Below, piece by piece: positions 25,775 to 57,137 of a DNA stretch of 64,000 bases (position 1 is the first letter of the stretch; the number at the start of each line of letters is the position of its first letter). The translations under genes were made by a program, and so were the position numbers. Below the pieces are notes generated by a model, which worked only from the letters and a program-made list of their open reading frames with translations, was not told where the DNA came from and searched no databases. This DNA is from Obrimoposthia wandeli (Eukaryota), in NCBI GenBank assembly GCA_977020255.1, contig CDROCS010001661.1, positions 1 through 64,000 on the forward strand, written 5' to 3'.

Positions 25775-25995
25775 AGTAGGTGTATGTGTCCGGTCTAATC
25801 CACACCCCCTCCCCCCTTGTCCTTTAAAACCGTGCATGTGTGTGGAGTGAAATTTCGTGTAGGTGTGTGGAGTGAAATTTCACTCCACACACATGCACGG
25901 TTTTAAAGGACAAGGGGGGTACTTCCCCCCCTAAAAAACATTTTCGAGCGTGTCGGCGCGAAGGACTCGGGACTGACATTGGTCACAGACTAGCC
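25775..25995 (+). repeat. Putative Polinton terminal repeat with perfect hairpin
   Basis: Starts AGTAGG. The 45-bp arms at 25811-25855 and 25875-25919 are exact reverse complements around a 19-nt loop. It ends in a partial 46-bp repeat unit. Confidence 0.8.
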
Positions 25996-30534: not shown

Positions 30535-31026
30535 TTAGGAAAGAATACAAGTTTGAAGATGTTTATTAAATAAAATACATTCAACATGATATTCATATTC
30601 TAGGGTCTTAACCCCAAGTATCATCACCTTCCCGCTCGCAAAAATGTTCACGCATAGAGGATTGTATTTGATATAACGTAGCCCTGGAAAAATTATGGTT
30701 CGTAAACTGCTTCCATTCTCATACTCTTGCTCATCTTACTCAGGTTTATTGGTTTTTCTAAGTACTGACACTGATTGAATTCTCTCGATTTTGATATTGA
30801 ACGGAAGAGTGCTTTCATCTAGCACAGCTTTACACCCCATGATTCGACATGTTCCAAAATTATATTAAAACTTAAATGTAAAATATATTACCAGATTTGT
30901 ACCAGATAGTATAACTATCACACTTGTGTCGGTACTGATGTGGCTTCGAAATGGTAAGTGTTGAATATTGCTTACAACCATTCCCTTGTAATTAATATTC
31001 ACAAATTTGATATTATGAAGTAACAT
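30535..31026 (-). pseudogene. Divergent second TBP-like gene with a 37-nt intron
   Basis: MLLHNIKFVNINYKG...WYKSG|TCRIMGCK...IQSVSV..LEKPINL..YEP*.FPGLRYIKYNPLCVNIFASGKVMILGVK. The intron is 30855-30891 (GT...TG); frameshifts are present. Confidence 0.85.
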
Positions 31027-31330: not shown

Positions 31331-34266
31331 ACAACATTATCAATCAATTGGAATCGGACTTCAAAGGATAAACAATTGAATAAGATCACTAAATAACTTT
31401 TCTCGAAGAATTCTCCTCTGTAAACACCTTGTTAAATTCCATCTCTGAACATGTATAAATCAGTACATAATATATATTTCTCTACATATTTTAAAATGTA
31501 TATTTAAAAATGTATTGATTATTTTAATTAATTGTGATAATGAAGATGAATGAATAGAGATTGTGATAATGAAGGTTGAAGATGAGTGATTGCTTTGATG
31601 AGATGAAGATGGATCGAAGTAATGAAGATGGATCGAAGTAATGAAGATTATGATATTGTGAAGAGATGATGATGTAACAATGAATGTATCTTTAATAAAA
31701 ATTATTCTTTGCTATCTCTATTTACTATTTTAACTCATAGGTTTAAAAATGTGTAATAAATACCTTAAGATTACAAAAAAACGTTTTTTACTCACAAATA
31801 AAAGTAGAATCAATTATACAAAATAAGTCATCACTTCTCACTACTTCTACAAGTTGTTCTTTATTTTTAGCTTGTTGAACATTTTTTACTTCTAGTAGTA
31901 CTGGGTGATTTTTGATTTTATCGTTTAGTCCATATAGAAACTGATGTAGTAGTAAGCATTCTCTTAAAGATTATATAAAATCATAATTGATTATCTGATC
32001 ATGATATTGCCGTAGTATAAGTTTCTTTTGAAAATAACCAATATGGTTCACTTTATTTTCTTAAAGCTCTTAAATATACCGTAATTCTTCTACTTATTAT
32101 TACTTAACCTCAATGGTGATTTAATTGAAGTATCTAATGACTGTGTACAACTTGATGAGTAGAAGAAAAAATAAGAAAAACTTGAATATGACTTACTATA
32201 TCGAAATAATAGTAAAATATTGATAATTTAAATACAACTTTCAATAATCACCATATGTCTTTCAAGGTTTTATATAGAACTTTAAAGCTTACGATAACTG
32301 TTATAATATTGATGAATTATATGCAATATTATTACTTTGGTATCAGTTTCTTAAGAAAATTATCAATTACATGTGATATAAAATCATCTTTTAATATACC
32401 TGTTTTGATTGTAAATTTGATATAAGATTCTTTGACATGAGGTATTTTCATCAGGTTTGTGCATAATATTGATACAATACATACATTATTGATCATTTCG
32501 GTATAACTATCTTTGAAAATAATTAATAATATATGAGGTTATGTAAAGATTTCGTCATGCAATACATGTTATTATCGTGATGATTTGTATGCAGTCCTTT
32601 TAGAGTTGCTTGAGGAGAAAATAACCCATCTCGCTTCTAAAACTTTCTTAATATTCCGTCATACATCACAATATCTGATTAATTCCTCAACTTTTTTGGG
32701 GTATATTTTCTCTTCTGAAATCTCCTAAATACTTCGTAATATCTTCTTCTACTTTGCATTGCTTCATGAAATGCTACATTATAAATATCAATGATGATTC
32801 AAGGCTGGCTGATGAAATGAATGTAGATAAGATGATTGAATATTGACTTTGGAAGTAGTCTTTGGATATTAGTTAAATCTATATAATTTCGGTATAACTT
32901 TCTTTGAGATCTTGGGTTAAGACTATTTATGATCACGAAGCATCTTCTAGAGATTTCTCTGTTATGTTTGAAGTTATTGATTGAATCAGATGATCCATGA
33001 ATTTGAAACGATGGATGAAATTGATATGGATTGAAAAGTAATGGATAGATATGTCTCTGTAACTATTTGATTCATTCTCACTAATACTCTTAGAAATTTT
33101 CAATATTTTTCCTTTTGAAACATATATAAATAGTAATTAATCATTTATATTCTTGAATATTGCATACGTTTTAATTACTATCTCTTCTCATATATAACAA
33201 TCCGGGTATAATTTCCTCATAAATCACAAGTCCAACTTTTAAAACATAATTATAAATTTTCCTATAATTCTCAATAACTTTCCTTCCCATAAACCTCTAT
33301 TATCAACCCTAATTTTTTTAAATATCAAACAACATGTTGATTATATATGTCAAACAAACCAGGTATAATTCATAAATTTCCTCACATATATCAAACAAGA
33401 TGTTGATTATCCCTTTCAGATATAACCTCTAATTCATCCTAATGTCAATTCTTTAACACTATTCTTCATTATTGCATCTAAATTTCAATAAAATACTTCA
33501 AACATTATCTTTAAAAAATATCATACCTAGCTTTGATTTTAATTGAAGGAATGTAGAAGGAATAGATGAAATGCTTAAATATTGGCTTTGGAACGATAAA
33601 ATTGATGACTTCGATAAAGCTCTTTTTGAAAATCACTTATTTACTATGTATTAATGAAATCGTTAATTTTCTTTCAATGTCTTAATATTAATTGATTAAA
33701 AGTATTTTTAATGTCTAATGAAGATAGAATCCATTTATATGAACCAAAACTATTAATAGTAATCATAAAGATTTTACCTGATTTTTTATAAAAATATGAT
33801 GACTTTATCAATACTCAGAAGTTGTTTCTTTAAGTTTTCCTTAATACCTATTGACTTATAAGCAGCTATTTACAACATCATTGATTATTTTCAACTTTAA
33901 AATCAATAATTGGGAATATGTCCACTAATCGTTATTACTCAATATCTAACCTAAACCTCTAACTTCTAATACTCTAGTTCTAATATTCTAATACTCTAAC
34001 ACTAACATCTATTACCAAAATATATGCGAAAAATTTATAAGAAGATGGTAAAAGTTTGAATAATATCTCTGCTTTTGTAAAAATTGTCTTCGTTATGACC
34101 GAAATATGAGTAAAATACTTATGATTAATTTTTGGTATAACTCACTTTGAAGCAGTATAAAGCTGAAATTCAATATGATCGCTTATATCATAATCTTAAA
34201 TGACCGGAAATTTGATAAAATACGATTTCACTACAGTTTTAGAACAGTAGTCTTATTTCCCTTCTA

Positions 34267-35300
34267 AACCACCTAAATATCTTCTAAATCACATTAAATT
34301 TCCTTTCAAAGTTGAATATATCCTATATTTTTTCTTCTGAATCTTATATACATCGCTTTTATTTTCATTCAATCTAGCTATCTAGGCTATATTTATCAAA
34401 ACATCTCTTTTAACCCCTTCAAAGCTTTGATCTGAACCATCTAAACATCATCGTTAAATTTTCCTCTAAATTCATCTAATTTCTTCTGAAACCTCCTGAA
34501 CTCACCGTTAAATTTCCCTCTAAATTCATCTAATTTCTTCTTCTGAAACCTCTTGAACTCCCTGTTAAATCTCCCTCTAAATTCCTTTAATTTCTTTTGA
34601 AACCTCCCCATATAAATTCTCCTCTGAACCAATTTAAGTTATATTTCCTCTTCTGAAACCTCTTAAAATATCCGTTAAATCCTCCTTTAATCTTCTTTAA
34701 GGTTATATTTTCTCTTCTGAACTCCTCGGTTAAATTCTCCTTTGAACCCTTTAGGCTTTAATTTCTTTTCTGAACCATCTAAATATCCCTTTAAATCTCC
34801 CTCTAAATCCGTCTAATTTCCTCTTGAAATCCTCCTTTAAACCCTTTAATTTCCCCTATGAACCAATTTTAATTTATTTTTTCTGAAACTTCTTAAATAC
34901 TCCTTTTAAATACTTCTCTAAAGACCTTTTACGGCTATATTTTCTGATACCTCCTAAACATTCCTGCTAAATCTTTTCTAAACCCTTCAAATCTATAATA
35001 TATCTTCTGAAACCTCTTGAACACTTTTTCAATTTGTCTTTTCTAACCATTCTATGCATTAATATTTCTTCTATAACCTTCTAAATACCTCGTAAATTTC
35101 CTCTTCTATGTAATAAACTTCCTAAATTCTATTCCTAAATCTCTTAAATAAATCACATCAATTTCACTTCATAATCCAATCTAGGCTATATTTTTGATAC
35201 CTCCTAAAAGTATCGTTAATGTCTCCTCTGAACCGCTACTTATCTTTCTATGTATTAATTACTCTTCTAGAGAACCTTTTGAACAAATCGTGAGTTTCTC
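34267..35300 (-). repeat. Inverted copy of the FRRFQK minisatellite
   Basis: ORF 34441-34632 is nearly identical to 27435-27626. Confidence 0.85.
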
Positions 35301-36149
35301 TTCTAAAACTATATCCATTATTTTCTATTCTTAAACCTTATAAACACCCATGTCATATCTCATCTAAATGTAACAAATCTCATGCATCTTCTTTATTTCT
35401 CTTATAGAACCTTTTATGTATAATGTCTTTACTAGACCGATTTATTTGAAGTAATAAATCGACTGGTTGTTGAGGTTTGAAAATAAGTTTCCATAATATT
35501 GATAACATCAATAAGCTTGTAGAGTTTTGCAAGAATTTTCTTGTTTGATATATCGATCAATGAAAAATTATTTTTTTAGAATATAGTTATCAATAGACTC
35601 AAGTAATATGAATAAATTATGACTGAGATAAATACATACTCTAAACATTATTGAATAAATTATATCAATAAATGATACTTGAAAATAATTTTAAGTTTAA
35701 ATGAATCGAAAGAGAGAATATAATTTAATCCATTTCTAGTCCTGATGTAATAATTTCTAAACAAAATGTTCCAATATAGTATTGATATCCGATGTTTACT
35801 AGTGATAATTAAATTAATTATTTATTACATAGATTAATTTCCTTAAATAAGCTAATCTTCAAACAATATTCTTTGAAACTAATCATTTTTTAGTTACAAA
35901 ACTTTTACAGATTATTTTACAAATAATAACTTTTGCAAAAGAAAGTAGAGAACATTTTTGATTTAATGAATCATTTTGAAATTTAATAAAATTCTTAGTT
36001 AAAGATGCAGATTAATAATATACTCTTGATCGTAAATTGACTAATTGATCAAAGTAATCTCTCTAATTATCCGTATAATTGTCCGTAATAAACTCTCACT
36101 TATTGATCATTATATACTCTCTTCAAATTATATCTTTATTACACGGAGG

Positions 36150-37063
36150 AATCCTTTAAATATGTTGAAGAGAAATCCAATTAGTGCATCTACCATATAA
36201 GAAACCATGTAAACTTTATTGACGCGTTGGCACATAAGAATCGTCAGGAAATACAACTTATTTATTCTGAAAGTAATTTTCTCCTTAAACTAAAATCAAA
36301 GAAAATTATAGAAATATGGCTAAATTCATTGAAAAATGATCAATTATTTGCATTATAATTTGCATTATTCTAAAAATCCTTGGTAAATTTATCTTCTAAT
36401 CTATAAATTGAGTGAAAATCGATCTTTCTAATTCGAAATTTACATTATTCAGAAAAATTATACAGTAAATTCATTTGTCAAATAAAATCCTTATAAATGA
36501 TCTAAGATTCAACTTTGCATCTTAATTTACATGATTCTGAAATATACACGATAAAATGCATTCTAAAATCGAACTTTTTATATCCAAATTACAATTTTGT
36601 TCTAAAGTGTCATAATGTAGACGTGCAAGCTACACTGTTGTCTGCAATGATTTTAGATGGATTATTAGACACATTAAAATTTTCTATAAACCATCCTTTA
36701 GCCAATACTGCGATATGCAAGTTTAAGGATGAGAGTAAGCAATGTAGATATAAGCAATGGGTATTTTTACGCTCCAAATCATATAGCTTAGAAACTATAG
36801 ACGGAAAGTCCCATATGAGAGCAATGGGAATTAGCCTTAAGCAGACTGTGCTACGCCATGCGAATTATTTAGCTGCATATGAGAGTGGGGTTAGTGAACG
36901 AGTGCGACAACAACGCATTAGTTCAATTAATAACCAGCTCTATACCGTAAATATGAGTAAGATCGCATTGAGTAGCAATGACGAGGAGAGAAAATGGGTA
37001 GAGAAAAACCGGTCAGTTGTCTATGGACATCATAGATATATAGATTATTTTTCACTTGAATAA
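36150..37063 (+). pseudogene. Polinton protein-primed DNA polymerase B, C-terminal fragment
   Basis: DSEIYTIK (degenerate DTDS.IY), HPL...KFKDE, FLRSKSYS, RAMGIS (KAKGV), KIALSSNDEER (KVALSP.DDKR) and YGHHR, in the order found in Polinton PolB. Confidence 0.88.
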
Positions 37064-37572
37064 TTGTTTTTGTATGTTTGAATTTGTATGTCACAAATTT
37101 ATTGTACCTAATTTTCTCTTTGGTTTAATAAATATTGGTCTTTTTCTAAGTTTAAAATTTTAAAGTATAAAAGTTCTATGTAAAATTATTTTTTTAAACT
37201 ATAAAAATTGTTGTAAAAAATTATGTTGGAAATTTTATTTTTAAACTATAAAAATTGTGTAAACAATTTTATTTAATTTTTAAATTTTTTTGTTTAAAAG
37301 CCATTTTTTTTGGTTAAAAACCATGTTGAAAATTTTTAATGTTGCGCAAAAAAATTGCATCTTATTCAAATAATTTTTGTAATGTTTGTTCGTGCCTAAA
37401 GATCAAGAATGAAGCCCGCCCTGAAGGTTCGGGTGGTGTATGTTAGGGTCTTGGGTATGACACGGGTCGTTTACATGTTGTGAGAGGTAAAGTGATACTG
37501 AAGCGCATGTTTTTGTAGTTATTTTCGCGAGAATGGAGCACGCCCTGAAGGGGCGGGCGGTGGGTGGATGTT

Positions 37573-37784
37573 NNNNNNNNNNNNNNNNNNNNNNNNNNNN
37601 NNNNNNNNNNNNNNNNNNNNNNNNNNNNNNNNNNNNNNNNNNNNNNNNNNNNNNNNNNNNNNNNNNNNNNNNNNNNNNNNNNNNNNNNNNNNNNNNNNNN
37701 NNNNNNNNNNNNNNNNNNNNNNNNNNNNNNNNNNNNNNNNNNNNNNNNNNNNNNNNNNNNNNNNNNNNNNNNNNNNNNNNNNNN
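37573..37784. other. Assembly gap (N run)
   Basis: 212 Ns. Confidence 1.
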
Positions 37785-37922
37785 GTACATCGCAGGGCTA
37801 GTCTGTGACCTATATGAGAGCGAGATATCCGTACATCGCAGGGCTAGTCTGTGACCTATATGAGAGCAAGATATCCGTACATCGCAGGGCTAGTCTGTGA
37901 CCTATATGAGAGCGAGATATCC
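37785..37922. repeat. 46-bp tandem repeat, three copies, abutting the gap
   Basis: gtacatcgcagggctagtctgtgacctatatgagagcgagatatcc x3, with one substitution in unit 2 and no spacers. Confidence 0.95.
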
Positions 37923-37933
37923 GAGGAGTTTCC

Positions 37934-38078
37934 CCCCCCTTGTCTTTTAAAACCGTGCATGTGTGTGGAGTGAAATTTCATTCCACACACCTACACAAAA
38001 TTTCACTCCACACACATGCACGGTTTTAAAGGACAAGGGGGGAGGGGGTGTGGATTAGACCGGACACATACACCTACT
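37934..38078 (-). repeat. Putative Polinton right terminus with hairpin
   Basis: Arms 37934-37978 and 37998-38042 (one mismatch). It ends ...CACCTACT at 38078 and lies downstream of the PolB 3' end. Confidence 0.8.
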
Positions 38079-38119
38079 CATCATAATTTACCTTATCACT
38101 GAATCTGTCTAAAATTTGA

Positions 38120-38515
38120 GGGCTATCGTGCGATTCGCTGATTATTCAAGCTCCAGCTCCTGTTCCAGTTGCAGCCTTTCAACCTGTTTACGGTCCTGAT
38201 ATTGGTCCTTCTCTCCACTCTCCCGAATCCGCTGCTGCCTCATCCACACAAATAACTAACAATGAGTGGATGAACTTCCTCTCCCAAGAAGATTTTGAGG
38301 ACTTGAACATTGACTGGATGGAAAATATCACCCAGTCAGATTTCGAGAGGGAGCAGCCTCAATGGAGCAACAACAGCTGGTTGGGGGACATCTAGGGATC
38401 TGATTTCGTTGAATTAACAGACGACATCTGGATGAATTCTGTCAATTAAGAAGACTTCCAATCAGATACAGTTGGATTGCCTTCATCAAGTTTTATTTTA
38501 TTACGATTTTTTTGA
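38120..38515 (+). pseudogene. Acidic repeat ORF remnant
   Basis: IIQAPAPVPVAAFQPVYGP...EWMNFLSQEDFE-DWMENITQSDFE-SWLGDI*GSDFV-IWMNSVN*EDFQ. Confidence 0.45.
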
Positions 38516-39896
38516 TGATTTTTTACTTTATGAATTATATAAAGTAATGCATAAGTGTTTTTAACTCCCCTCTCATCACCACAAGATACTTAATAATCAT
38601 ATTTAAGACCGTTTAGAACTGAAAATCTCAATGATCGCCCATATAGTGCTCAAATCTCGGAGAGGTAAGTTCACTACATTGATTAATTATTGATTATTCA
38701 AAGTATATGTTAGAGTTAAATTTAAAAGAACATTAAAATAACAAATATTTAAATAACTATCCTTAAAAAATATAAAGCAAATAAATAACAATTGCCTAAG
38801 TTATGCATAAAGTTTATACTAAAATACTTATTAAAATGATATGTAATTAAAATGTTACCCACAATAAAGAAAAATAGTTTTAAAATATTAATTAATTTTA
38901 TGTAAAATTCACCTTTTTACGAATAACCTTTTAAAGAAAGACCTTAGCTCTAAAACTGAACTATTCATAAATGATTAATGAAATATTGATTTACTTCATG
39001 TATGCTCGAAAGTTTTTAAATTTTCATATTAAAAAAGTTCCACAAAAATGTGATTTTTGTTAATTAAAACGTTAATTAATTAAAGTTGAAAGAAGAATTT
39101 CTAGACATCTAAAAGTCGCACATAAATGAACAACTCATCATTTTAAAACATAAATTATTTCCAATTGAAAAATATACGGCTCATCAAAATTACACTTTTG
39201 GGTAAAAACGTCCTATAGTATAAGAAGTACATAAAACTGTACAATACTAACAGGCATACACACTTACTAACGGGTTACCCGATGGAACCTAAGTGGACAA
39301 ATTATCTAGATGACCAAACCTTATTTAGATTAAACTAATCCGAATCAAATTCCCCAACAGAAAGACCCAAGCACTACACAGGAACTAAAAAGAAATTAAA
39401 TTGGTTTTTGGAAATTAAATTCAATAATTTTACTGGACATCCTCCTACGAAGAATACTACAGATAATTATTTTTATTTTTGTGTTATGTTCATGTATTCA
39501 TGTGTTAAAATATTGACATTTTAATTTATGTAACTCTCAGAATATTTAGCCCCCTGGTCATTTTTATTTGTATGTATTAAAATTAAATTACAATTTTTGT
39601 ATTTAATAGAGCCCAACATATACTAGAGATATACTATGAAATTAATTGATAATAAAATATTTCATTTTATAGAATATAATTAGATTAAAAATATTGGGTA
39701 TGCTTCTTTGTACTTTCTTCATTTAAAAAAAGTGCGTCTTTATATTCAGAGCCATTTAAGTTTACTTTTACTTCGAACTACAGACTTGATTAATTTATTC
39801 ACTTTTTATCTTACTGATTCTTTTTCTTGATCTCTTAGGCTTTACTTTTTCTTTGCATTTACGTTTTACTATCAACTTCTTAAAATGCAATGCAAA

Positions 39897-40527
39897 TTAT
39901 TTTTTATAATTTTTTTCTTTTTGTTTATAAACAGTTACTCCCTTAGAATTAAATATATATGTTAAAACACGTAAATCATATAAGCAGGCTTGTGTAAATT
40001 CAATAAATATATATTCATGTGCTTGTTTATCAGCATCATGGAATGAATGAACTAGAAAGTTTTTATTTTGGGTAAAAGCTTGTCTGGCCACGAAATTTAC
40101 AACTGTTTGATCTCTCGAATTTTTAAATAATACTAAGTAATGTATATTAAAATATCTTGATCTATGATGACATCCTTGATGAAAAAGATTTTGAGTGATA
40201 AATATATCTGTTACTTCACGATGTCTTGCAATCTTTGTAAATAAATTATTAAAGTCCGATTCCTTGTTAGCTTCTTGATACTAATCATCAATAATTAATA
40301 TATTTTATTTCTTCAATCTTTCGCACAAGTCGTATCAAATCCTTCAATAAATATTATTACCTTCAACTTGCAAACTTCTGTTTGGTCTATTCTACTTTCC
40401 CCTCCTCCACCATGATACTAAAAAATATTTTTAAAACTGGAATTGGAAATAGTTTCATTTTGTAACAATTTCCTGGGATCCACTTTCCACTGGGATCAAC
40501 TATTTGAAATACGGTATTTTTATTCAT
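39897..40527 (-). pseudogene. Polinton packaging ATPase remnant, copy b
   Basis: Same motifs as copies a and c. Confidence 0.85.
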
Positions 40528-40554
40528 CTTCTTTACATATAGACTTTCATATAA

Positions 40555-41020
40555 TCATTTATTTTCAATATTCGATTCAACAGCCTATTGATAATCCAAA
40601 TTTATCAATCTCAAAATCATAAGTTTCCCACTGGAAAATATATTTACACATATCGGTGAAAACGTCAAATATCTGAGTGCAGGAAACTTTTCAGGTTCAA
40701 ACATGCATCGTTCTATCATTTTCTCTGTAATTTTATAAAGATTTATTGGTTTCCCAAGATTTTATGAAACTATGATTGATTGTTTGGTGCAGATTTGAAT
40801 TCCTAAAGAGTAAATTGATCTCATTAAATGGTGTTTTGCATCCCATAATAAAAACTAACTTGAGGGAAACATACCAACTGTTTTGATACTGAGAAGACCC
40901 ACTCTTCTCAACGAGACATTAAACAATGAGGAAGTATAATAAACTGGTATATACGGATTGGCATAAAATGATTCTTCATAACTTGTTAAGCTTATATTTC
41001 TCCAAATACTTTTTAGCATT
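40555..41020 (-). pseudogene. TBP-like gene remnant, copy b
   Basis: Duplicate of 5170-5636. Confidence 0.8.
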
Positions 41021-41184
41021 CAAAACGAAAAAATAAATTCATTTCAATAAAATTCCTGCGACAATTGAGGATATTTATAGATTTATTTTCAACCAATACA
41101 TTATTACAAAAAAATATTTAGATACAATTGAATTTTCCGAACAGATAATACATAATTTTAATACAAAATTTATCAAATCATAGA

Positions 41185-42054
41185 ATGGATTCATGTATCA
41201 TTTGTACTGGAGAGCTAGAGGATGGTGAAGTTTGTGTGACTGAGTGCAGACACTATTTCCACACCGAGTGTCTCAAGGTATGGATGCTAGTCAACTGTAG
41301 CTGTCCATTTGAACGAAATGAATTGCAGTACATCTTCATTTGTCAAAATGGCACTGAGAGCCGAGTTAGTGTGGCCACACTTCTGCGGAAAGAATGGGAA
41401 GGATTGTGCAGAGAGATTGTGGAGGATAGTAAAGCGAAGTGTTCGGTCTTGTATGAGGTGCTGACGACCCAGATGGTGCTGACCCATGAATTTCTAGAAT
41501 TAGCTGCACAACAACGGGATCACGGACCGACACTGGAAAAGTGGTTCCATTGTCTTTCGTATTTATGCAACACTATGCAAAGCTTCGAGGATGAGTTCAC
41601 AGAAAACTTCATCAAGGTCCTGGAAACAGAACAGAATTCAGAAGGCTCTGACAGTCTGGAGTCGTCTTTGAATTGCATGAAAGATGTGCAAGAACAGCTG
41701 TTATCTCTTGTACACATCTGCAGCGTGTTAGGGGCCATAGGTGGCGATTTGGACCGGGTCCGATCTTTGTGTCAAGATTTAGAACTACTGGTCGACATCA
41801 CACGGGAAGGTGTAGTCGATCTCAAGATCTACTTCCTCACGACGAAGCTGCCAACTCAGCTGAGAGGTAACATGAAAATAGTGCTTTTTGGAAGAGCTTC
41901 AATGCAGCATTGTGCCATGTGCCGAGAAGAAATCGTTGATGTTGAGCGACTCCACGAGAGCCCCAAGACCTTAGGTATTTGTGGCCACAGGATCTGTCAC
42001 AACTGCACCCTAGAATTACACGAGTTGGACATATTTTGTCCACATGAAAATTGA
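41185..42054 (+). CDS. Twin-RING protein (N-terminal RING-H2-like, C-terminal RING-HC-like), putative E3 ubiquitin ligase, intact copy 3
   Basis: 289-aa intronless ORF: C-x2-C...C-x-H-x2-H-x2-C...CPFE and C-x2-C...CGHRICHNC...CPHE, joined by a predicted helical linker. E3 activity is inferred from RING family knowledge. Confidence 0.9.
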   Translation: MDSCIICTGELEDGEVCVTECRHYFHTECLKVWMLVNCSCPFERNELQYIFICQNGTESRVSVATLLRKEWEGLCREIVEDSKAKCSVLYEVLTTQMVLTHEFLELAAQQRDHGPTLEKWFHCLSYLCNTMQSFEDEFTENFIKVLETEQNSEGSDSLESSLNCMKDVQEQLLSLVHICSVLGAIGGDLDRVRSLCQDLELLVDITREGVVDLKIYFLTTKLPTQLRGNMKIVLFGRASMQHCAMCREEIVDVERLHESPKTLGICGHRICHNCTLELHELDIFCPHEN

Positions 42055-44469
42055 ATTCTTTTGACAAGTACCAAAAAGGCTTTGTTTTTTAATAAATTTA
42101 GTAATCTTTCTAAAATTACTTTGTATAAAATTACTTTTAATATTATTAAATTGAACAAAGGCAGTTATTTATTTTAATATAACATTATAAATAACATGCT
42201 TTTAATTTTTTTATTAACAATATTTACACTTCAAACCTTTAACTAACCATGTAGTACAGTTGGCGTCCACAAAATGTAAGAATACAAGTTGATTTAATCC
42301 ACTCAATGATGCTGGAGGGGATTTGAGTGTTTTATTTTACACTGCAATAAAAGCCGTTACAATATTTGTTCTATCTGAAATACAAATGAAAAAAACATTA
42401 GGAAAGTGAGAACATACTAACTATTCATTTTTTTATATTTAATACTTGATATATTAATAATGTTAAAAATAAACTATCTTATTTAAACTTTTTAGATTTT
42501 TTTATTAAATTTTAAATCTAGTGAGGATACAAGTTAAGGGTTATGGAATGCTGGCGGGTAATTTTAATACTTTTACCATTTTTTAATTAATTTTTATTAT
42601 ATTTGAATTTTTATTATTGAAATATTAATTAACTAAATTTTAATTAATTAAAATTTTATAATACATATCCGTTTAATAATATAATTTTATTTAAATACAC
42701 AAATTAATATATTATATATTTTTACTAAAAAATAATGTTAAATAATCAAACATTACCGATAAAACTTTTTCTAAAGTGGGAAAATAATGAAAAATTATAA
42801 AAACCTAAATATAAATAGAGAATAAGATTGGATCAAGTAACGAACACCGAGAAAACACTGCATTTTAAGTATTCAGGGTCTGAAACAGTATCATCAAATT
42901 TTAACAGATAGTTTCCGCTAAATAAAATCCCTTTTAAACCAATTAAGCTCTCCACAATTCAAATGCGGCAGATAGATCAAAAAGTATTATTAGTACGCAT
43001 TTTTCATAGTTTAAATATTTTAATACATTTTATACTAAACAATGCCATTTTAGTTCAATGATAACTTCTATAAGCTGTTTGGCAAATACATAAACACATT
43101 CTTTTTTAAGTAACTGATTAATTGTTTCAAAACTTATTTTTCAAGAACTTTCAATAAACATTAAAAGTTTAAATTGTATTTACAAATTGATAAATTGGCT
43201 TTGTGCGCACACAAAACATAATACCGAAAATGATTGCATAATACCACAAGGATGGCCTGTCACACTATTAGCATTACAAAGACGATTAACTTTAGATCAA
43301 ACTTTTCGATGGTTTCACTGATTTCTGTCAGTGAATGAAATGTCAATTCCAGTCAACTATAATAGTAAATAAAAAAAATGCCTGTTATCAGTAATGAGCA
43401 AATATTTATTGAAGGTGACTACTGAATTTTGACGGGTATTGCATAGAGAACATTAAAATTCTAGGTAGTGTACTAAAAAAATAAATTGCAAAAGTTATAA
43501 CTTAATCTTAAAAAATATCAAAGATCATTTTATTTGTAATAAAAACCAATTCAAAATTTTTTCTAACAAACCATAAAACACTAAGTTAAATAATCAACAA
43601 TGAAATTTGACATTTTGAATATATAACGGTCACTGTCTTTCAGTAAATTGAATATATTTATTTGTATACTTACTTTCACACATTTTTAATTTTTAGACAG
43701 TGCAGTAACAAAGTTTCATATGGGTAGCTACCCAGCCATCTCATGGCTTTATTAAATATTAGTAGATTGCGATGTGTTTCAAGGTATGCAAATATGATTA
43801 TAGATAATGGTAAAAAATTATACTTCCCCAAGGCTTTTCCGCGTGAATTCTAAATATTGCCGAATTGAGACAGAAGAAACGATAGAAAAACGTTTAACTA
43901 AATATTTATCTTGTTGTTATTATTGATTCATTTCTGACATGTTTTAAAAACTTTTCAAAATTAATTTTGTAAGATGTAGGGGAACTCAGAATAACTTGGC
44001 ATCATATTATTCTAGAGTATGAAATATATACCAAAAAAGAATTAAACATTGGGTAAAAGTAGTGCCAAAGACGTTTTGCAGAAAATCTGAAAATTACATT
44101 TTTAAAGAAAAATATAAATAACATTTCAAAGTAAAAGTTTTTATTAATATTTAACTGACATATACTAATATATATCGTAACATTAAATTGTTTTTAAGAT
44201 TATTTTATTCTCTTTTCTAAGGTTTGTGATATATTTTAGATTAAAACTGTAATATTATGCAATTTAGACTCGTCTTGCATGATAAAAAGTTTTCCTCGAA
44301 AGAAAAATCAGATACAATATGAAATTCTTTAAAACGCGATAGATACTAAATTCTAGGACATTATATTGAGGAGTTTGGAAAAAATATGTATATGTTCTAA
44401 ATTTGATTGAGGATATACCAAAATTGTCTCTCATAAGATTGAGACTATTGCTGATCCAATTTTCAAAAT

Positions 44470-46420
44470 CTAGACGACAAGCAATGCAATTAGAAATCCA
44501 ATTTGATGAAAGGATGAAAGTCATTCGAACCTTCATTGGTCATTGTAAAGAAACCAGACAATACAAATCGAATGTGTGTTGACTACAGCCAATTATATGA
44601 TGTAACCAAGAAGTTTACATTTTCAATACAAGATGCACAACTCTTGTTCGATTGTATAGGTGATGAAAAAATATTTACGACACTAGATATTGGACAAGCT
44701 TATTACCAGGTAGATCTAGAGAAAGAATCTCAGACAAAATCGACTCTCAGTACAAAACTGAGACAATTTTATTTCAGTTGGTGGCCATTTGGGTTGGCTA
44801 CAGGACCTGCCACATTCCAGAATCATACATAGAAATTCTAATGGATTGCTGTTCAGAAGAAAAATTGTATATCTGGATGATATCCTTGTCTATAGTAACA
44901 ACCAAGAAGAACATTATAAATTATTAAGGGAAGCATTCAAAAGAATTGCAGCTGCAGGTCTCAATATAAACCCTAATAAACGCTACAATGATCAGAAACT
45001 GTTAAAAGCCATAGGTCATACGATAACACAAAGCTAAATACATATAAATCAGTCTAAAGTCAACGAAATTATAAATTTCAAAGAACCCGACTGTAAGGGA
45101 AACTATGATCATACTTAGGAATGACAAACTATTATCGACGATTTATAAAAGTTTATGCCAATATTGCAGTCCCACTATGTCACAAGGCAATCATACTAGA
45201 CTTTTCCAGGTGAAATAAAACATTTATAATTTTAACAGATGCCAGTTTTGGTGCGATTTGGGGCAATATTGTGCCAACTGAATGAAATGAGAAACAAAAA
45301 AGTGATTGCATATGCTTCAAAACATTTGACTTTTCATGAGAAAGAATATTGTGTTACCAGAAAGGAACTTTTAGAAGAATACTAATTTAATATGTATTTC
45401 AAACAATATTTATATGGAACAGAATTTTTTGGAAAGAACATATCATAAATCGTAAGTGTTTTTAAGAACAACAAAAATTTCAATCAGTCCTCAATTTCAA
45501 ATATTACTGAAAGTTTATCAAAATTTAATTTTAAGTTAGAACATCGTAAAGGTATTGACCATGGTATTGCCGATGGCTTGTTAAGATTGAATGAAACCGA
45601 CTGCACTCAGTGCAAAACTAAACATATATATGCACAAGAGAAGATATCTAAAATACAATATATTCACTCACTAAATGAAGACAACTTCTTCAGTAAGATA
45701 AGAAAAATACAACAAGAATATATTCATGTGAAAGAAATGAAAGTGTGCATTTAATTATAAAGTATAGATTTATCAGAAGAATGCAAAATAAATTGGATTT
45801 AGCAGATAAAAGAAACACTTAAACTCTGCGATGATATCTTTTATTTTGAACATAATTTTACAGATTTAATAGTCATACCTACGAAAACGCTTATGAAATT
45901 ATTAATAACATTTATCAATATCTTTGTCATCTAGGAATGCATAAGGTTTATAAATATATGAAATATAATTTTATTTTGGAAAGAATAATTCAAAAATAAA
46001 ATAAATAAGTTGAATTTTTAGATCAAATGCTTGTCGATACAGCCCACATGAAGGAAGGATGATCTAAAAAGAAATATATGTCGATAGTAATCGATCGATT
46101 TAGTAAACTGGTATTACTATTAATAACTACAAAATAAGATGAAATAACAATTACTAAAGAACTCATAGACAAATTGAATATATACATTTGGGAAACCTAA
46201 AAGCATTTTAATAGATATAGGACGAATATTTACTGGAAATTATTTTCAGAATTAGCGACGAAAATTTGGTATGTTCAATACAGCTCTTAATCAAAGTAAC
46301 GGTCTGGAAGTAAGAGTTATACACACATTAAGATATATGATGGTTAAGACAAAAGTGTCTACTAAAACAGGAAAATGCGGGTTGGATTTTACTCGGCATA
46401 TTTGGTTGCAGATAATGACG
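44470..46420 (+). mobile_element. Ty3/Gypsy pol remnant (duplicate of 9100-11050)
   Basis: Same RT/RH/INT motifs; LGTGPATFQ-like RT motif (WPFGLATGPATFQ) is in frame here. Confidence 0.92.
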
Positions 46421-47156
46421 AGGAATAATATTTGTGAGAGTCTAGTGCTGTGAAAATAGATGATAGTGAGCCTCTATGGTATCCCATTAAAGTGTATGTA
46501 GAGAAAGAGAAGAGAGCGGAGGAGAAGGAGAAACCTAGAATCGAAGATTTAGATCAAACTGAAGGAGAGGCAGCAAAAGAGGACAATGTAAATAATTTTT
46601 GCATATATATATATATTTTTAAAAAATAATAAGTAATTTTTACTAACAAATATTTTAATTAATTCTCTCTCATTTGATCGGGTAGAATTAAGTCAATTGT
46701 AACAGTTATTGTAAATAATGAAACATTTTGAAGATTTACGGTAGCATTAGGCGATAAAGTAAATGACGCGATTATAAGCGCTACTAGAATAGGTCAAATT
46801 TTAGACAGATTCAGTGATAAGGTAAATTATGATGTTATAAGCACTACTAGAATATGTCACCGGTATAATATAGATACTATTTATACAAATCCCGGAATAT
46901 TTTTAGGAACTAGAGAGACAAGAGTGTCTTTTAGTCATTGCTCTTTGGAAGAAAGGGTGTTAGTAGAAAAGCTTGCGGAAGCTCGTTTTCCTCATTTTCC
47001 CCAATTGACTAATTTAAATAGTACATTTTCTGCAACCAATATTTTAGGGAATAAAGATAAAAAGGTAAAAGTAAATACCTTCATTAAGCCTAACCTCAAG
47101 TCGTGTTTTTTAATATAGAGCAAAAATATCCGTGTGATTGAGTACATGGAGAGGTG

Positions 47157-47900
47157 TAGTTGGAAGGATATACGTGGAAAGGTAAGATACTCTGGGAGTA
47201 CTGGTTGGAATCGGAAGGGAAATGCATAAGACCAGACGACGTTATTAAGAGCGGTGCAAACGTCAGGGTAACACCAAAATTGAAAGATGACATGGAACAT
47301 GAGAAGAATATAACTAAGTTGGATATAATACTAGCAGGAGAAGAGTGGTCAGATTCATGTAACACTAGAGAAGATACAGATTAAAGAAAAGAGTATAGAG
47401 ATATCGTACGAAGATTTGGTGAACAAAATAATAAGGAATTGGAGCAGGCGCTGGAGTAAAAAGAACAACTCGAGATAATGGAAATAAAAAGTGACATTGC
47501 AAAGATAGAAAGAGAATTTGAAACTAGAACCAAAGAAGAGTCAAGCTATGTGAAAGAAGAAGTCAATAGATAAAAGAAGTCAGACAGAAACGTTTTAAAG
47601 GGTCGGAAAAAGATTAGTATTCCATACTTCTTTGGTGATTATAAATATTATGAGAGTAGGCGGGCAATATTTGATACTGTCATCGATCAGACCGATGCAC
47701 CAAGGCAAGAAAATAATGCTGCAGCTGATGGAGGTTCACGGATGCAAGTTACGATAAAGCTTTAAGATTGCTAGAAGAAAGATACGATGGAAGGGAAAGA
47801 AATTAAAGAGGTTTATTGGATGAAATTTAAATGTTTAGAGTGATAAGATGGGGAGAAGACCAAGATCTGGATGCAATTTTACAATTAATAAACAAGATAA
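47157..47900 (+). mobile_element. BEL/Pao gag remnant (duplicate)
   Basis: Copy of 11790-12530. Confidence 0.7.
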
Positions 47901-48326
47901 TACTATTTAAAGCACATCCGCTTGTGGTAATTCGTACACCAACGAAGGCCGAGTCAGCGGACAATGGAAGCGGAGGCACCATAATTTTCACAGAAATCAC
48001 GATAGGCATATAAGTTTTAGATGTTTTTGAAGAATATTTTAACATAGTTCGAGTTAAAAATGAAAATATATTTTGGGATAAAATTAGACTGAAGAACGAT
48101 CCATAGAGTAAACATGATCTGATAGAGGTAAATAAATATTAATTTGGAATTCAGCATGTTCGAATCATATATATAAACTTTAAAAATCCCACAACAGAAG
48201 AAGGTTTTCAAATGTGAGCCAGTAATAGTTATTTGTATTAAATTTTTGTATATTTAATTATTGTAATTAATTTAACACTTTATAATTTTTTTTATTATAA
48301 TTTTAAAGAAAATAATAATTTTAGAA

Positions 48327-48364
<38 letters not shown>

Positions 48365-48799
48365 CAATCGTACTTGTACTTGAAAAATTAATTACATAAA
48401 ATGATACATTATCATGAAGTGGTCGCAGTGACCCCATGCTAATAATGAAGTAGAACACAGGTGTATATCACTTTTAATATTAGTTTAATTTGAGTAACAT
48501 TGGTTGTTAGCTGGTAATTATATCAACAGTTACTAAACTTGTAAGCTTTAAACTGTATTTAGCGATGTTTTTAAAACAAACCATTTTAATTAGTTTATTA
48601 TCAAAACAAGCCAGGGTAATCAGATATGGGGTTTTTTTCATCCATAGATGAAAGGGTCTGGCTCAATTATAACTTGACGGTTTGAAGGTATGGTTGGCCA
48701 ACATATCCAAGGGGTTGAGGTCGTCTATATATGAAGGGGTAGGGATCAGTTACGACTTGAAGTTATATTTGATGTCATCTTAATTTTTAAAATTTATTT

Positions 48800-49660
48800 A
48801 AATCTGAACTTTAAATTTTACTGGGATATTTTTCTCCAATATTCTCTGATATATTCTCCAACAGTATCAAATTAACAATATTTCCTACCTTTTTCTTTGA
48901 TTTATATGCAATGTATATGTAGGAATTTTTATAACATAAATATATTTTTCTTTGATGACGGCATCATTGTATCAAAGTACATTAATCCTTATATTCGGAT
49001 TCTTTGTCTCAAACTTTAATATATTTGAAATCTTCATTGGCATATCTGTTTCGTCAAACATCAAATCTTTCAAAACTGGTGAATACTTTCATACAAGAGT
49101 TGTATGATTAGTAATCTCACCATGTTTCAAATCAGCCAGAATTAAATAAATAAAACACAGATTGTCATTGTTTTGAAAACTTACAATAGCTTTACTTTTT
49201 TATAACGATTTTTGTGTTGGAATGTTTGAATGTCCAGATAATGCAGATCTTTCACTATATTTCGTTATGACAAATACATAGTCTAAAACTTTTATTAATT
49301 TCCATCCACTTCATTTTCGGAATATTCTTCAACTCTCTTATCCATAGTTTCTTCGATTTCAGGCATTTTTCATAAATAAATATGACCGCCTTATGAGACC
49401 GTTCTCCTTTTTTAATTTCATCCGTATAAAGTATTGAATTTTTGCATTGCCCATATTATTCATTATTTCTGCTACTTTAAATAGAAGATTATTCGGAATT
49501 TTTAAATCAATAAGATCTAGATGAGCAACTTTCATTGTCGAAGCCGGAACTGCGATTGGAGTCAAATCATAATTTAAAGCTATAGTCGGAATTGAATTTA
49601 AAAATCTTTTTTCTACTTATAAATGCTATTAAATAATGTTTTCTATAAAATTCTTATAAT
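48800..49660 (-). pseudogene. Polinton PolB N-terminal fragment, copy 3
   Basis: Copy of 13440-14300 with local sequence differences near 48840-48960. Confidence 0.85.
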
Positions 49661-49695
49661 TATCCAGTTCTGTAGTTGAACAATATGGACAAATA

Positions 49696-50486
49696 TGTTG
49701 GGAATGAAAAAAATTGAGTTATTTATGATGGGTTAATTAGTGGAAAAGTTAATTAATTGTTCCCTTAATTGAGGGGCGATTGGAGGGGTTATATAGATGC
49801 ACTTTGGCATTTTTGTTTTCCTTCAGTCCCTGACCGGCTTAACCGGTTTCGCCCTGCCGGCTCGTCGGGGGGACGGCAGATTTATCTCTAGCTTCGCGGT
49901 GGGCAAAATGCCAGCGAAGTCAGAGATAAAAAAGAAAAACAGATTAGAAGAAAAACACTTACCTGCACAAAGTCGTTCAGGTTTCACAGAACCACCTCCA
50001 CTACCGCGATCTGCCTTGGCGCGGGAAGCAGAACTCCGGACCTTCTTCCACATCTTCATCGCTCGGCAACCTCCGCTGTCCAGACCGCCTTCATCGGATG
50101 CAGTCCTGTTTTCTCTTCTTTCAACAGCGGCAGTCTTCTGCATGTTTGTGTGTCTCCAAAAACAGTTACAGCACAAATCGATATCTCCTTATCTCTGCCT
50201 TTTGCACTCTGTTAACTGAGCATTTACTGCTGACTGTATGCAGGTGATCAGTTGCTATAAATAGCAACATATTTTTGGATTCGTGACACAAACAACTATA
50301 ATAATTATTATCATTGCTTTGACAATTTACAGAACCGTATTGGAAATAAAAAATTGCATTTTGATTTTTGTTGTTGAATTTATCGCATTTTGAGTTATAA
50401 CAATTTCATTGGGAAACAAAACGATTGGAGTTGATATAATTTTGGAAACATAGAGTTTTGAATTTATTGAATTCGGAGATATAACA
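49696..50486 (+). mobile_element. 791-bp solo LTR (duplicate)
   Basis: TGTT...AACA ends with AATA TSD, at the same site as 14334. Confidence 0.85.
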
Positions 50487-51787
50487 AATATAATACATGT
50501 CTTAACGATATTTATACCCATAATATTGTTGTATTTTATTGTGACATTTTTCTAAATTCAAATGTTGAAGTTCTTGACAATGAGATGGATATTACGCTAA
50601 TTGCGCTAGATAACAAACTACAAAGAAAGTATTAGGTTTGAAAACTGTTCAATTATCTAGTAATTAAAACTATAATAAAGAAATACAATAAAGTTTATAA
50701 ATAGTATTAAACTAAACATTGAGAATATAATTGTCGTTTTTATCAATTATTTAATTGTCTTTTATTACAAAGTAGACAATATCTAACAAATTAATTCACG
50801 TACTATTTTATATTGACAAAAGAATCATTGTTGAAAAGGATTAATACACAGATTAACCAGAAGATATATGGAGAAAATAGTGTTTTACTGATAATAAGCA
50901 TTTTAAGCTGACCAAAAAATTATTTGTTATTTATATACTATTTTTAAAAAATATTTATTTAACATTAAGAGTACATGATATAAGGTTTTAGTGAAATAAA
51001 TCAGTGGCTTCAGTATGGGGAGTATAGCAATATGATCTGGGAGGTGATCACAAGTTAGTTGGTCGAGTGAAATTTAAGGACATGTTAAACATATTTGTTG
51101 TGAGATGCATTAAATTATAAAGATTTTTTATTATCACAAGAGGTCTTTCAGAATATGTATACCAATATGATTAGAAGTTTAGAAGATAATGCAGTTTTTG
51201 TCAACGGGATACTCGGAATTGTATTAACTAATTTTTCCAGAGACTTAAACCAAAAAACTTAAAGAAATAAGTGAAGAAAATTATAAAGCTGAAAATACAT
51301 TTTTAAGTAAATTATATTGTTATTTACGAAAACTCACGAAATAATTATTACAAAATTTTGCTACACTACAATTATTCCATTCTGCTTATTCGAACAAACA
51401 CACAACATTGATAATTGCACTAAACTAGAATTTTTAACATTCAATTTTTGTAGGAAATATTTTAAGGGTTTTCTGATATTGTTTTTTTTCGATTATAAAT
51501 TTTTCCCAATATGTCAAATGTTTTCTTAAATTTGTCATTCTTCAATTTTTTTTAATAAATAGCCTAGAAAGACTTTCTCTACCCTTTTGAAGGCCTAGAA
51601 AATATACATTATTATACACTACAAGATTAGTAATTAAAATTGTAGTTCCTAGATTTCTGTGGTAAATGTAATGATGATAGTGGTGAAAAATATTTTTGTT
51701 CTGGATGCCAAAAAAGATTATCACCAGATTTTATTAAATAAAGAGAGTAGGAAATATGTGGTGTTTGGTGAATAATGTAAAAGAACT

Positions 51788-52210
51788 GTTAAATGTTTAG
51801 GAGATATGTTACGTGCCGACGGATTGAGACCTACGAAAGATAGATGTGATAAATTGAAAGCATATCCAACACCAAAGAATCACAATGAATTTAGAAGTGT
51901 TTTAGACTTAGCAGGATATGTGGGTCAGAAGTTATCTAAAGGCTATTCGGAATTAGTTGGAGATTTATGGGATATTATGAAGAAAGATGTTTATGTATGG
52001 AAAGACAGCCATGAATCTCAGTTTATAAAATTGAAACATGAATTATCAATTATAAACCCTTTGAAAATATTTAATAATGAGTTAAAGTGAAACTTAGAAC
52101 AGATGCAAGTGACTATGGGCTCGGTGCTGTTCTATTACAAGATAATCAACTTATTATTTATGTCTCACGAAAATTAAATGACACGGAAATAAGGTACTCA
52201 CAAATATAAA
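51788..52210 (+). mobile_element. Gypsy RT connection/RNaseH fragment (duplicate)
   Basis: Copy of 16420-16845. Confidence 0.88.
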
Positions 52211-52703
52211 CTTGGCCAATGTTGAATAATAAAAGTAAGCCTTGGTTTTATTGATTTGGTAAATTTAATGGTTATGCACACCTAACTTGGCCAATGCTAA
52301 ATAATGAAAGTAAGGATTGGTTGTATTGATTTTTTAATGAGACCAAAATATGTGGTAATTGTGATGATGATAGTGGTGATGGTGGGTGATGGTGGGATGA
52401 TAATGTGTAGTGGTAATAATGATAAGTTTATTATTATTTTTGTTATAGAATTATAATAATCCATTCCATGGATTATGAGTTTGAAATCCTGGGTGACATG
52501 CCTAAATAATTATGATTATAATTATTGGAGTATTTTTTAAAGTTGAATTTAAATCAATAAAGTTGTTAGTGGCTTATGATTTAAAGCTCTTTCAGTGTCT
52601 TATACGATAAATTGTCTACACTTGTCTACTTATGATAATCTATGCTTATGTGACCTTCAATTGAAAGCACAATAATTTCATAGATATTATATGTCTGCTC
52701 ATG

Positions 52704-52797
52704 AGTAGGTGGATATGTCCGGTCTAATTCACGCCATCCTCCTACCGCCGGAGGGCTACCACTGTCATTTAATACCGTGCATGTGTGTGGAGTGAAA
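52704..52797 (+). repeat. Truncated terminal repeat copy (duplicate of 17336)
   Basis: AGTAGGTGGATATGTCCGG...GGAGTGAAA. Confidence 0.7.
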
Positions 52798-54043
52798 AAA
52801 ATCTATACATGTCAAATGTTATTGATGTTCTTTTGCAGTAACCTGCAACACTCATAGAAGAGAGACCAAACGCATTAGAAAGTCGAAAACCAATATTCTA
52901 CATTCTACGGAGACATTAATGGAACATTAAAATAAACTTCCTTATCCTATTATTGAGGAAAATTTTAATATATTTAATAATATTTTTTATCTAAATATTT
53001 TATAATATTTAACAATTCTTTATTGCATGGTCCTTCAAAGGTAACTGAGGAGACTTGGCGATAAATTTCTCCTTTCTCGCGGAAACGGGTAAAGCGAGCA
53101 GATGTGCAGAAAACGAAGCGCTCCAAAAGTGTATCACCGCAATGTTCAATTCTAGAGAAGCAGTGATTGATCATGGACTGGGATGAAGCTGGATTGGACG
53201 AATTGCCTGCAGAACTGGAGAATCCGGAACCGACAATGCTTCCAGATTCGCGAGGGCAGCAGGATGCGGTCTCACGTCAGCTTCAGCATGAGAAGGAGAA
53301 ACTGAAGAAAGCTTCGTGGAAGAGGAAGGCCATCAGGTCATCAGGAGATTCTCCCATTTCCAGTGGACTACGGGCCAATTTTGTTCGAGAGGATACCAGT
53401 CTCTCCAATCGAGATTAGTCCGCCTCACAGTCAACGATGTCTGCAGGAGACAGAACCGGCTCCATTAAGCACCAGGTAAAATTTGGCCAGGGCTTGGGAC
53501 ACTGCTATCCCTCTGCCAACAGCATCTACCTGCCAGAACTTGAAGAGGGTCTGAGATGAAGCTAGATTAGATATTACGGTTTTTGGTATTTTTTAAGATT
53601 AAGTTATAACTTTTGCAATTTAAATTTTTTTAGTACACTACCTAGAATTTTAATCTTTTTTATGCATTACCTGTCAAAAGGCTGCACCATTGTGTACACT
53701 GTTCCAAAAAACCAAGATGATATGTGGAAAAAGTCATTTCAAAGACGTTATATGCACTGCTAAGTTATTAAAATAACAGAAAAATGATGTATGTAACAAA
53801 TTCTTTATATTTTAGTTATTTATGGTATTGATTTCTATATTTCGTTAAAGTTTTAAACTAAGAAAAAAACGACAAAAATTCAGTAGTCACCTTCAATAAA
53901 TATTTGGTATTTACTGATAACAGACATGTTTTTATTTACTATTATAGTTGACTGGAATTGACATCTCATTCACTGACAGAAATAAGTGAAACCATCGAGA
54001 CGTTTGATATAAAGTTAATCGTCTTTGTAATGCTAATAGTGTG

Positions 54044-56442: not shown

Positions 56443-56619
56443 TCTATGATTTGATAAATTTTGTATTAAAATTATGTATTATCTTTTCAGAAAATTCAAT
56501 TTTATCTAAATATTTTTTTGTAATAATGTATTGGTTGAAAATAAATTTATAAATATCCTTAATTGTTGAAAGAATTTTATTGAAATGAATTTATTATATC
56601 GTTTCTGAATACTAAAAAG

Positions 56620-57120: not shown

Positions 57121-57137
57121 GTCTAGATGTAAAGAAG

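Follow-up and report, generated by a model that had tools for sequence, protein, structure and literature searches.

Locus and gene copies

The window analysed here, i.e., the first 64,000 nucleotides (nt) of contig CDROCS010001661.1 from Obrimoposthia wandeli (assembly GCA_977020255.1, forward strand), carries four copies of a gene whose predicted product has one RING domain at each of its two ends. We refer to it as the twin-RING gene and to its copies as A to D. The DNA is eukaryotic-looking, with a GC content of 29% and retrotransposon fragments, and gives no tRNA or Rfam match over the 64 kb. Only five open reading frames (ORFs) of at least 150 amino acids (aa) are found in the window. 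The two longest, of 289 aa each, are copies C and D, and the remaining three correspond to the tail of copy B, a DNA polymerase B (PolB) fragment and a retrotransposon pol fragment. A previous sequence-only reading of this stretch had described four copies, two of them intact, and had singled out the intact ones as the long intact ORFs of the 64 kb; the ORF calls confirm the coordinates and the counts, and the two 289-aa frames are indeed the longest. The copies, and a possible processing signal, are as follows:

41185-42054, plus strand: twin-RING copy C, intact, 289 codons followed by TGA
55573-56442, minus strand: twin-RING copy D, intact, 289 codons, 13 nt and 6 aa apart from copy C
5803-6676, plus strand: twin-RING copy B, one frameshift, otherwise no in-frame stop
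3507-4364, minus strand: twin-RING copy A, decayed, at least 15 frameshifting insertions or deletions (indels) and one in-frame stop
42091-42096, plus strand: AATAAA, 37 nt past the stop of copy C, a possible poly(A) signal that carries little weight in AT-rich DNA

Copies C and D differ at 13 of 870 nt (98.5% identity). The chance of finding a 289-codon frame open is 2e-8 with the base composition of the ORF and 2e-11 with that of the window.

Domains of the twin-RING protein

The protein can be divided into four parts, given here with the coordinates of copy C:

41194-41313, plus strand: N-terminal RING-H2 variant, residues 4-43, located from Pfam, PDB alignments and AlphaFold
41329-41370, plus strand: predicted beta-hairpin, residues 49-62, right after the RING
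41371-41910, plus strand: middle region, residues 63-242, predicted mostly helical at low confidence
41911-42048, plus strand: C-terminal RING-HC-like domain, residues 243-288, located from sub-threshold Pfam matches and a match to the TRIM23 RING

The N-terminal domain reads C-x2-C-x13-C-x-H-x2-H-x2-C-x10-C-P-F-E and is followed by Arg44. It is recognised by the Pfam model zf-RING_2 over residues 2-42 (E = 8.3e-10, 39.2 bits against a cut-off of 27.3). In alignments with solved structures, its CPFE sits on the CPxC of EL5, Arkadia and RNF165, and Arg44 is placed opposite the Arg that follows the last ligand in EL5, Arkadia/RNF165 and RNF38. Of the eight Cys/His ligands that define the C3H2C3 type, seven are present, and Glu43 faces a Cys in every solved RING-H2 match. 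An AlphaFold run on residues 1-70, supplied with an alignment of 31 RING proteins, predicts a beta-beta-alpha RING core followed by the beta-hairpin, with a predicted local distance difference test score (pLDDT) of 92. All Foldseek matches to this model are RING ubiquitin ligases (E3s). RNF165, RNF38, gp78 and Rbx1 superpose on it at 0.8-1.9 Å, as expected of a RING cross-brace fold, with RNF165 and RNF38 fitting at 0.8-1.6 Å over 44-48 residues, and RNF8, LNX and TRAF6 match it over longer stretches. By the model, the N-terminal domain thus has a standard RING-H2 fold. By alignment, Trp33 in the helix, Pro41, Arg44 and the hydrophobic residue that follows Cys4 are all retained; they correspond to the residues that RING E3s use to hold the ubiquitin-conjugating enzyme (E2) and to prime the E2~ubiquitin conjugate.

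The C-terminal domain follows the pattern C-x2-C-x19-C-x-H-x2-C-x2-C-x10-C-P-H-E, with all seven Cys/His residues at canonical RING-HC spacing. Scanned alone, it scores 19.4 bits with Pfam zf-C3HC4 (cut-off 21, E = 1e-3), and several RING models match it at E values of 1e-3 to 2e-2, every one under its cut-off. Its best and only notable solved match is the TRIM23 RING (5vzv, E = 0.004 against the PDB alone), in which CPHE lies opposite CPFD. Judged from its ligand pattern, the domain is RING-like though under curated thresholds. It has neither the Trp nor a residue at the position of the Arg, and the protein ends one residue past the last ligand. The description of the product as an N-terminal RING-H2-like and a C-terminal RING-HC-like domain placed at the two extremities agrees with the ligand patterns and, for the N-terminal one, with Pfam. 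Its further presentation as a two-headed E3 goes too far: given the missing Arg and Trp, the abrupt end and the sub-threshold scores, the C-terminal RING would more readily serve as a partner or for binding than as a further catalytic head.

The 180-residue middle region has no detectable homologue, no Pfam family and no Cys/His cluster. A recent internal duplication as the origin of the two RINGs was considered and rejected, as the domains have only the ligand frame in common (24% identity, E = 1.3).

An acidic eighth position shared by a small RING family

Both RINGs end in CPxE, with Glu43 in CPFE and Glu288 in CPHE, as had been read from the sequence alone. To place this ending, the column of Glu43 was followed in 156 RING domains taken from the best 150 matches among 1.84 billion representative proteins. 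It is occupied by Cys in 147 domains, by Asp in nine and by Glu in none, and the next column holds Arg in 140 and Lys in nine. The Asp-bearing matches include every one whose similarity extends past the RING (P0139, P0085, P0018 and P0031), and P0018 has two Asp-bearing RINGs. Together with the Asp-bearing P0051 and with P0152, which was found with the family alignment, these form a set of six metagenomic relatives of the N-terminal part, chosen because they match beyond the RING or share its ending. All six display CPxD-Arg as well as Ile50, the residue of the predicted hairpin that is invariant among them. Pairwise E values between the metagenomic relatives and the twin-RING protein range from 1e-11 to 2e-8, and a profile of the relatives' RINGs ranks the N-terminal RING first of 215 domains (60.6 bits). 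With the same family profile, the C-terminal RING scores 9.8 bits and ranks 206 of 215, and the idea that a second family unit, comparable to that of P0018, begins here and is truncated was rejected.

In the family alignment, C4, C7, C21, H23, F25, C29, W33, C40, P41, R44 and I50 are invariant, and Cys38, a possible stand-in ligand, varies. On sequence evidence, the twin-RING protein belongs to a small unnamed CPx(D/E)-Arg RING family, so far consisting of a handful of metagenomic ORFs. Because the acidic eighth position and the following Arg are conserved across this family, they are a family trait and not a degenerate mutation. The contigs on which the relatives are found are short and carry no Polinton genes; in one case, a retrotransposon fragment lies next to the relative.

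An acidic eighth ligand is not without precedent, as the sequence-only reading had also pointed out, and this is borne out by the alignment with the CPFD of TRIM23. C3HC3D is a recognised RING type with Asp at ligand 8, found in TRAF6 and Roquin and accounting for 5 of 139 fly RINGs; the arrangement of Rbx1 is related (PMC3166285). No record of Glu as the eighth ligand of a RING was found.

Proteins with two RINGs exist. Among the 1.84 billion representative proteins, neither a full-length relative nor the arrangement of one N-terminal and one C-terminal RING was found. Likewise, no close relative was returned by a word-indexed search of 5.8 billion proteins, by exact look-up or by a scan of JGI metagenomes.

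Polinton/Maverick remnants beside the gene

Broken genes for a TBP-like protein and an A32/FtsK-type ATPase are found next to copies B, C and D, 0.3-0.4 kb upstream and divergently oriented. The gene order is in each case ATPase remnant, TBP-like remnant, twin-RING gene. The element-derived features of the window are:

40561-40881, minus strand: TBP-like remnant of the copy C unit (Pfam TBP, E = 7.6e-7, 29.3 bits against a cut-off of 22.9)
5214-5465, minus strand, and 56721-57116, plus strand: stop-bearing TBP-like counterparts, located by tblastn with relatives
30565-30999, minus strand: fourth TBP-like copy, divergent, nearly full-length and stop-bearing, at the centre of a large palindrome with no ATPase beside it
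39921-40527, minus strand: A32/FtsK-type packaging ATPase remnant of the copy C unit, at least two frameshifts and three stops
4538-5144, minus strand, and 57135-57744, plus strand: ATPase counterparts, located by tblastn
36593-37033, plus strand: C-terminal fragment of a protein-primed PolB, Polinton debris at least about 3 kb away from any RING-gene unit

One open piece of the ATPase is 75% identical to 210-aa metagenomic PF04665 proteins (E = 8e-53). The three broken copies, at 64-75% identity to these proteins, can be attributed to the packaging ATPase of Polintons. In tblastn searches, no rve integrase was found in the window and PolB is represented by a single fragment, whereas intact relatives have both; capsid and protease genes are likewise missing when all called genes of three relatives are used as queries. 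The window therefore contains element remnants, not an element.

The intact relatives, on contigs designated L008, L010, L012, L013 and L019-L023, show a Polinton/Maverick layout comprising a TBP-like gene, the ATPase, small ORFs, an rve integrase with a chromo domain, several unassigned ORFs and a protein-primed PolB. In L008, L010, L012 and L019-L023, the TBP-like, ATPase, integrase and PolB genes follow one another in a conserved order. No terminal repeats were found in the DNA fetched for the relatives. The TBP-domain gene is a conserved neighbour of the ATPase (L010:5699-6142, L012:2335-2769, L019:2891-3337). Near this pair, L010 and L012 carry a small conserved ORF of 123-154 aa, L008 carries the small conserved ORF together with a TRAF-like protein with RING and MATH domains (7923-8912), and a Bcl-2 homologue is found in L019 (3563-3940) and also in L020-L023. 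This region thus appears, from its predicted genes, to collect host-pathway genes. Bcl2, IAP, TRAF and TBP-like genes are known in adintoviruses and related viruses (Starrett et al. 2021, PMC8502044), and RING-finger clusters are on record in polinton-like viruses. The twin-RING gene has the place and the orientation of the gene that diverges from the TBP-like gene in these relatives, with a spacer of about 0.3 kb here and of 0.1-0.3 kb there.

The sequence-only reading had noted that RING E3s are frequent in large DNA viruses. A DNA-virus-like element does adjoin the gene; this neighbour is a Polinton/Maverick remnant and not a large DNA virus, and no giant-virus relative was found. Giant-virus or other viral origin of the protein was rejected, the IMG/VR matches being generic RINGs with canonical CPxC.

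Segmental duplications carrying the copies

Self-comparison of the window maps the four copies inside large duplications:

39770-52888 and 4388-17520, direct: 13.1-kb segmental duplication, 98.9% identity, carrying copies C and B
39345-43265 and, inverted, 54355-58321: 3.9-kb unit, 97% identity, with the ATPase and TBP-like remnants, the RING gene and 1.2 kb downstream
1-4385 and 5782-10593, inverted: older arm, 77-87% identity, carrying copy A

Because all four copies lie inside such duplications, they are passengers of the segmental duplication of a transposon-rich block and are not self-amplifying. The term amplified, applied to the gene itself in the sequence-only reading, is thus misplaced, since what has multiplied are segments of 3.9-13 kb.

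The older palindrome has its inner edge 21 nt upstream of the copy A start codon; beyond this duplication breakpoint, the upstream region of the copy has been lost. In this copy, small indels (15-21) are about as many as substitutions (21-30), with few of them in homopolymers, and its first ~280 nt are 99% identical to copy C. This pattern suggests, from the alignment, either gene conversion or an assembly error in the repeated region. An apparent excess of conservation of the copy A ORF over its flank (3.5% vs 16% divergence) was discarded, being inflated by misalignment of the AT-rich flank. A gentler alignment leaves a patchy contrast of about 2.5-fold, with a stretch resembling a gene-conversion tract over the first ~280 nt.

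Other repeats are found around the copies. An unrelated palindrome (24603-29261 / 32815-39250) lies between them, with arms 98-99% identical and a 3.5-kb centre; its right arm has an extra segment containing the PolB fragment and a gap of Ns (37573-37784). A ~2-kb repeated element is present in four copies (13227-14334, 19052-20159, 48595-49696 and 62309-63415), is adjoined by the family at 15122-15993 and shows weak tblastn similarity (27-37% identity) to a 335-aa ORF located beyond PolB on the Polinton contig L008. A 0.8-kb insertion in a repeated element includes a GC-rich stretch of ~430 nt (14430-14860 and 49797-50219) with an open frame on either strand, of 140 and 117 aa, and with no Pfam, Rfam or plasmid match. 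Decayed pol fragments of long terminal repeat (LTR) retrotransposons, with reverse transcriptase and later domains, are located at 44536-45037, 9165-9557 and 58340-59367. The first two lie downstream of copies C and B at a distance of 2.4 kb, and the third directly adjoins the copy D unit.

Maintenance and base composition of the ORF

Copies C and D show no break in 870 nt. Each 0.6-kb ATPase remnant has at least two frameshifts and three to six stops and uses two or three reading frames, while each TBP-like remnant beside copies B, C and D has one to three stops. As these breaks are found in all three units, the death of the element genes probably preceded the duplication of the unit, and comparison of the copies indicates that the 870-nt RING ORF was then still intact. 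The proposal that the gene was kept open while its neighbours decayed is consistent with these counts, namely zero breaks in C and D compared to at least five in each ATPase remnant. The ORF is also distinct in composition. In copy C, it has a GC content of 45.6% (50% at third codon positions) between flanks of 23-30%, the edges of the GC island coincide with the start and stop codons at 100-nt resolution, and all four copies have about 45% GC. Two histories would fit: selection on the ORF during the decay of its neighbours, or its arrival once they were dead.

Proposed function and alternative explanations

Altogether, these findings lead to a reading, to which we give about an even chance, in which the twin-RING gene encodes a RING E3 that is functional, or was so until recently, and is associated with a Polinton remnant. 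This includes the proposal, from the domain matches, that the ORF is genuinely coding and specifies a ubiquitin ligase of the RING type. In the proposed scheme, an acidic side chain would complete zinc site 2 in place of the eighth Cys, the part played by Asp in C3HC3D RINGs, and the N-terminal RING would recruit and activate E2~ubiquitin. The helical middle could serve in oligomerisation or substrate binding, and the C-terminal TRIM23-like RING might act as a non-catalytic partner or binding module. By analogy with the intact relatives, whose TRAF-like and Bcl-2-like genes lie near the same gene pair, the gene is probably an accessory or captured gene of the element, having entered as such or become one. 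It would then have outlived the element's own genes, either because it was kept by the host or because it arrived late. If it is element cargo, the same analogy suggests interference with host signalling or cell-death pathways.

Several observations weigh against this scheme. Regarding the zinc site, no match offers a solved precedent for Glu as a structural ligand in a RING, and the residue that really binds could, instead of Glu, be Cys38 (N-terminal domain) or His287 (C-terminal domain). The full-length AlphaFold model has a pLDDT of 42 and is unusable. Regarding maintenance, two of the four copies are broken. The 13 differences between C and D comprise nine non-synonymous and four synonymous changes, giving a ratio of non-synonymous to synonymous substitution rates (dN/dS, NG86 method) of 0.43 that does not depart significantly from neutrality (p = 0.29). 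The dN/dS comparison proposed as a check with the sequence-only reading thus leaves selection among the copies not demonstrable. As regards the link to the element, the ORF, at 46% GC, stands well above the element remnants (28-30%) and the intact relatives (32-36%). There is no terminal repeat, integrase or capsid gene near the RING gene, and no remnant beside it of the small conserved ORF that flanks the TBP-like gene in relatives; nor is there any relative of the twin-RING protein in the fetched Polinton contigs. With relatives, flanking ORF, repeats and further element genes all absent, a former place of the gene inside the element is a conjecture.

Part of this evidence would suit a different history, in which an ordinary lineage-specific host RING gene had a Polinton inserted beside it, the element decayed and the neighbourhood was later duplicated, the adjacency being due to chance. 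A host gene would account for the lack of twin-RING relatives in Polinton contigs, for a GC content unlike that of the element remnants, and for sparse relatives found on short contigs away from Polinton genes, with a retrotransposon fragment next to one of them; moreover, a mosaic of retrotransposon and Polinton debris makes chance adjacency easy. However, the divergent spacing of ~0.3 kb to the TBP-like gene resembles the compact layout of the relatives, which hold host-pathway genes, including the RING-bearing TRAF-like one, in precisely that neighbourhood, and a host gene would be expected in protein collections, yet none was found there. We therefore regard a host origin as possible but somewhat unlikely. 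In another reading, the ORF is a non-functional relic, i.e., a recently captured or transferred GC-rich frame with two copies open only through youth. At the 1.5% divergence of C and D, about half of neutral pairs would still be without a new stop, and the lack of a significant non-synonymous deficit, the two copies already broken and the ~45% GC of all copies in a genome of 29% GC, which suggests recent arrival, can all be read in this way. Against this, a 289-codon frame that has both ligand sets complete, retains the conserved Arg, Trp and Pro and contains a RING modelled with high confidence implies selection until recently, and the element genes gathered many breaks over the same duplication history, at the start of which the RING ORF was intact. 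Such a relic strikes us as unlikely. A more elaborate version of the element-associated E3 can also be formulated, in which a Polinton/adintovirus accessory gene has been domesticated by the host, with a catalytic RING-H2 and a silent TRIM23-like RING as a self-sufficient pair in a single chain, Glu zinc ligands of a kind unseen in solved RINGs, and palindromic amplicons that would be kept in the manner of ampliconic germline genes; we consider this combination highly improbable.

Significance

On present evidence, the twin-RING gene is a curiosity more than a discovery, unusual in detail and ordinary in kind. RING-H2 E3s, an Asp-type eighth ligand and host-pathway genes in adintoviruses are already known in kind; new here are the segmental-duplication origin of the copies, their Polinton neighbours and the acidic eighth ligand as a family trait. 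If Glu completes zinc site 2 in both domains, the RING ligand repertoire of Cys, His and Asp would be extended, and the Glu ligand together with the sparse CPxD relatives would define an uncharacterised RING subfamily. If the gene is Polinton cargo, a ubiquitin ligase would join the Bcl-2, IAP and TRAF-like host-pathway genes of animal-associated virus-like elements, and would represent a case of such a gene outliving its element.

Comparison with known systems

The N-terminal RING is closest in form to the RING-H2 E3s EL5, Arkadia/RNF165 and RNF38. It shares with them ligands 1-7 and their spacing, the helix Trp, the Pro after ligand 7, the Arg after ligand 8 and, by prediction, the fold, at 0.8-1.6 Å. 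It differs in having Glu where they have Cys at ligand 8, and in its position at the extreme N-terminus of a protein that continues with a hairpin, an orphan helical region and a C-terminal RING. The C3HC3D proteins TRIM23, TRAF6 and Roquin, and Rbx1 with its C6H3C2D arrangement, have an acidic last ligand position in common with it, and the Foldseek matches to the modelled N-terminal RING include TRAF6 and Rbx1. In these RINGs, the residue is Asp instead of Glu; Glu288 lies opposite the Asp of TRIM23, in a similarity that is weak. Because its eighth ligand differs, the twin-RING protein is a strict member of neither the C3H2C3 nor the C3HC3D type. Unlike the C3HC3D proteins, it has no B-box, coiled-coil/ARF, TRAF zinc-finger or MATH domain. 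Membership in the TRIM, RBR and IAP families was rejected since the defining domains are absent: Pfam finds no B-box in the middle region (E values up to 10), no IBR, the linker being helical by prediction, and no BIR.

Like the accessory genes of adintoviruses and Polintons, the twin-RING gene lies next to TBP-like and packaging-ATPase genes. It has no sequence relationship to those accessory genes, and here the element is a broken two-gene remnant to which the RING gene would belong by position. The nearest counterparts by sequence are the six metagenomic relatives, P0139, P0152, P0085, P0031, P0051 and P0018, with which it shares the CPx(D/E)-Arg RING, the strand with the conserved Ile and a helical sequence, as well as a RING that is N-terminal or opens a repeat unit; P0018 also has two RINGs. 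The relatives are RING-HC at ligand 5, where the N-terminal RING of the twin-RING protein has His, and they carry Asp instead of Glu. None has a RING at its C-terminal end, the second RING of P0018 opening a second full unit, whereas that of the twin-RING protein closes the chain.

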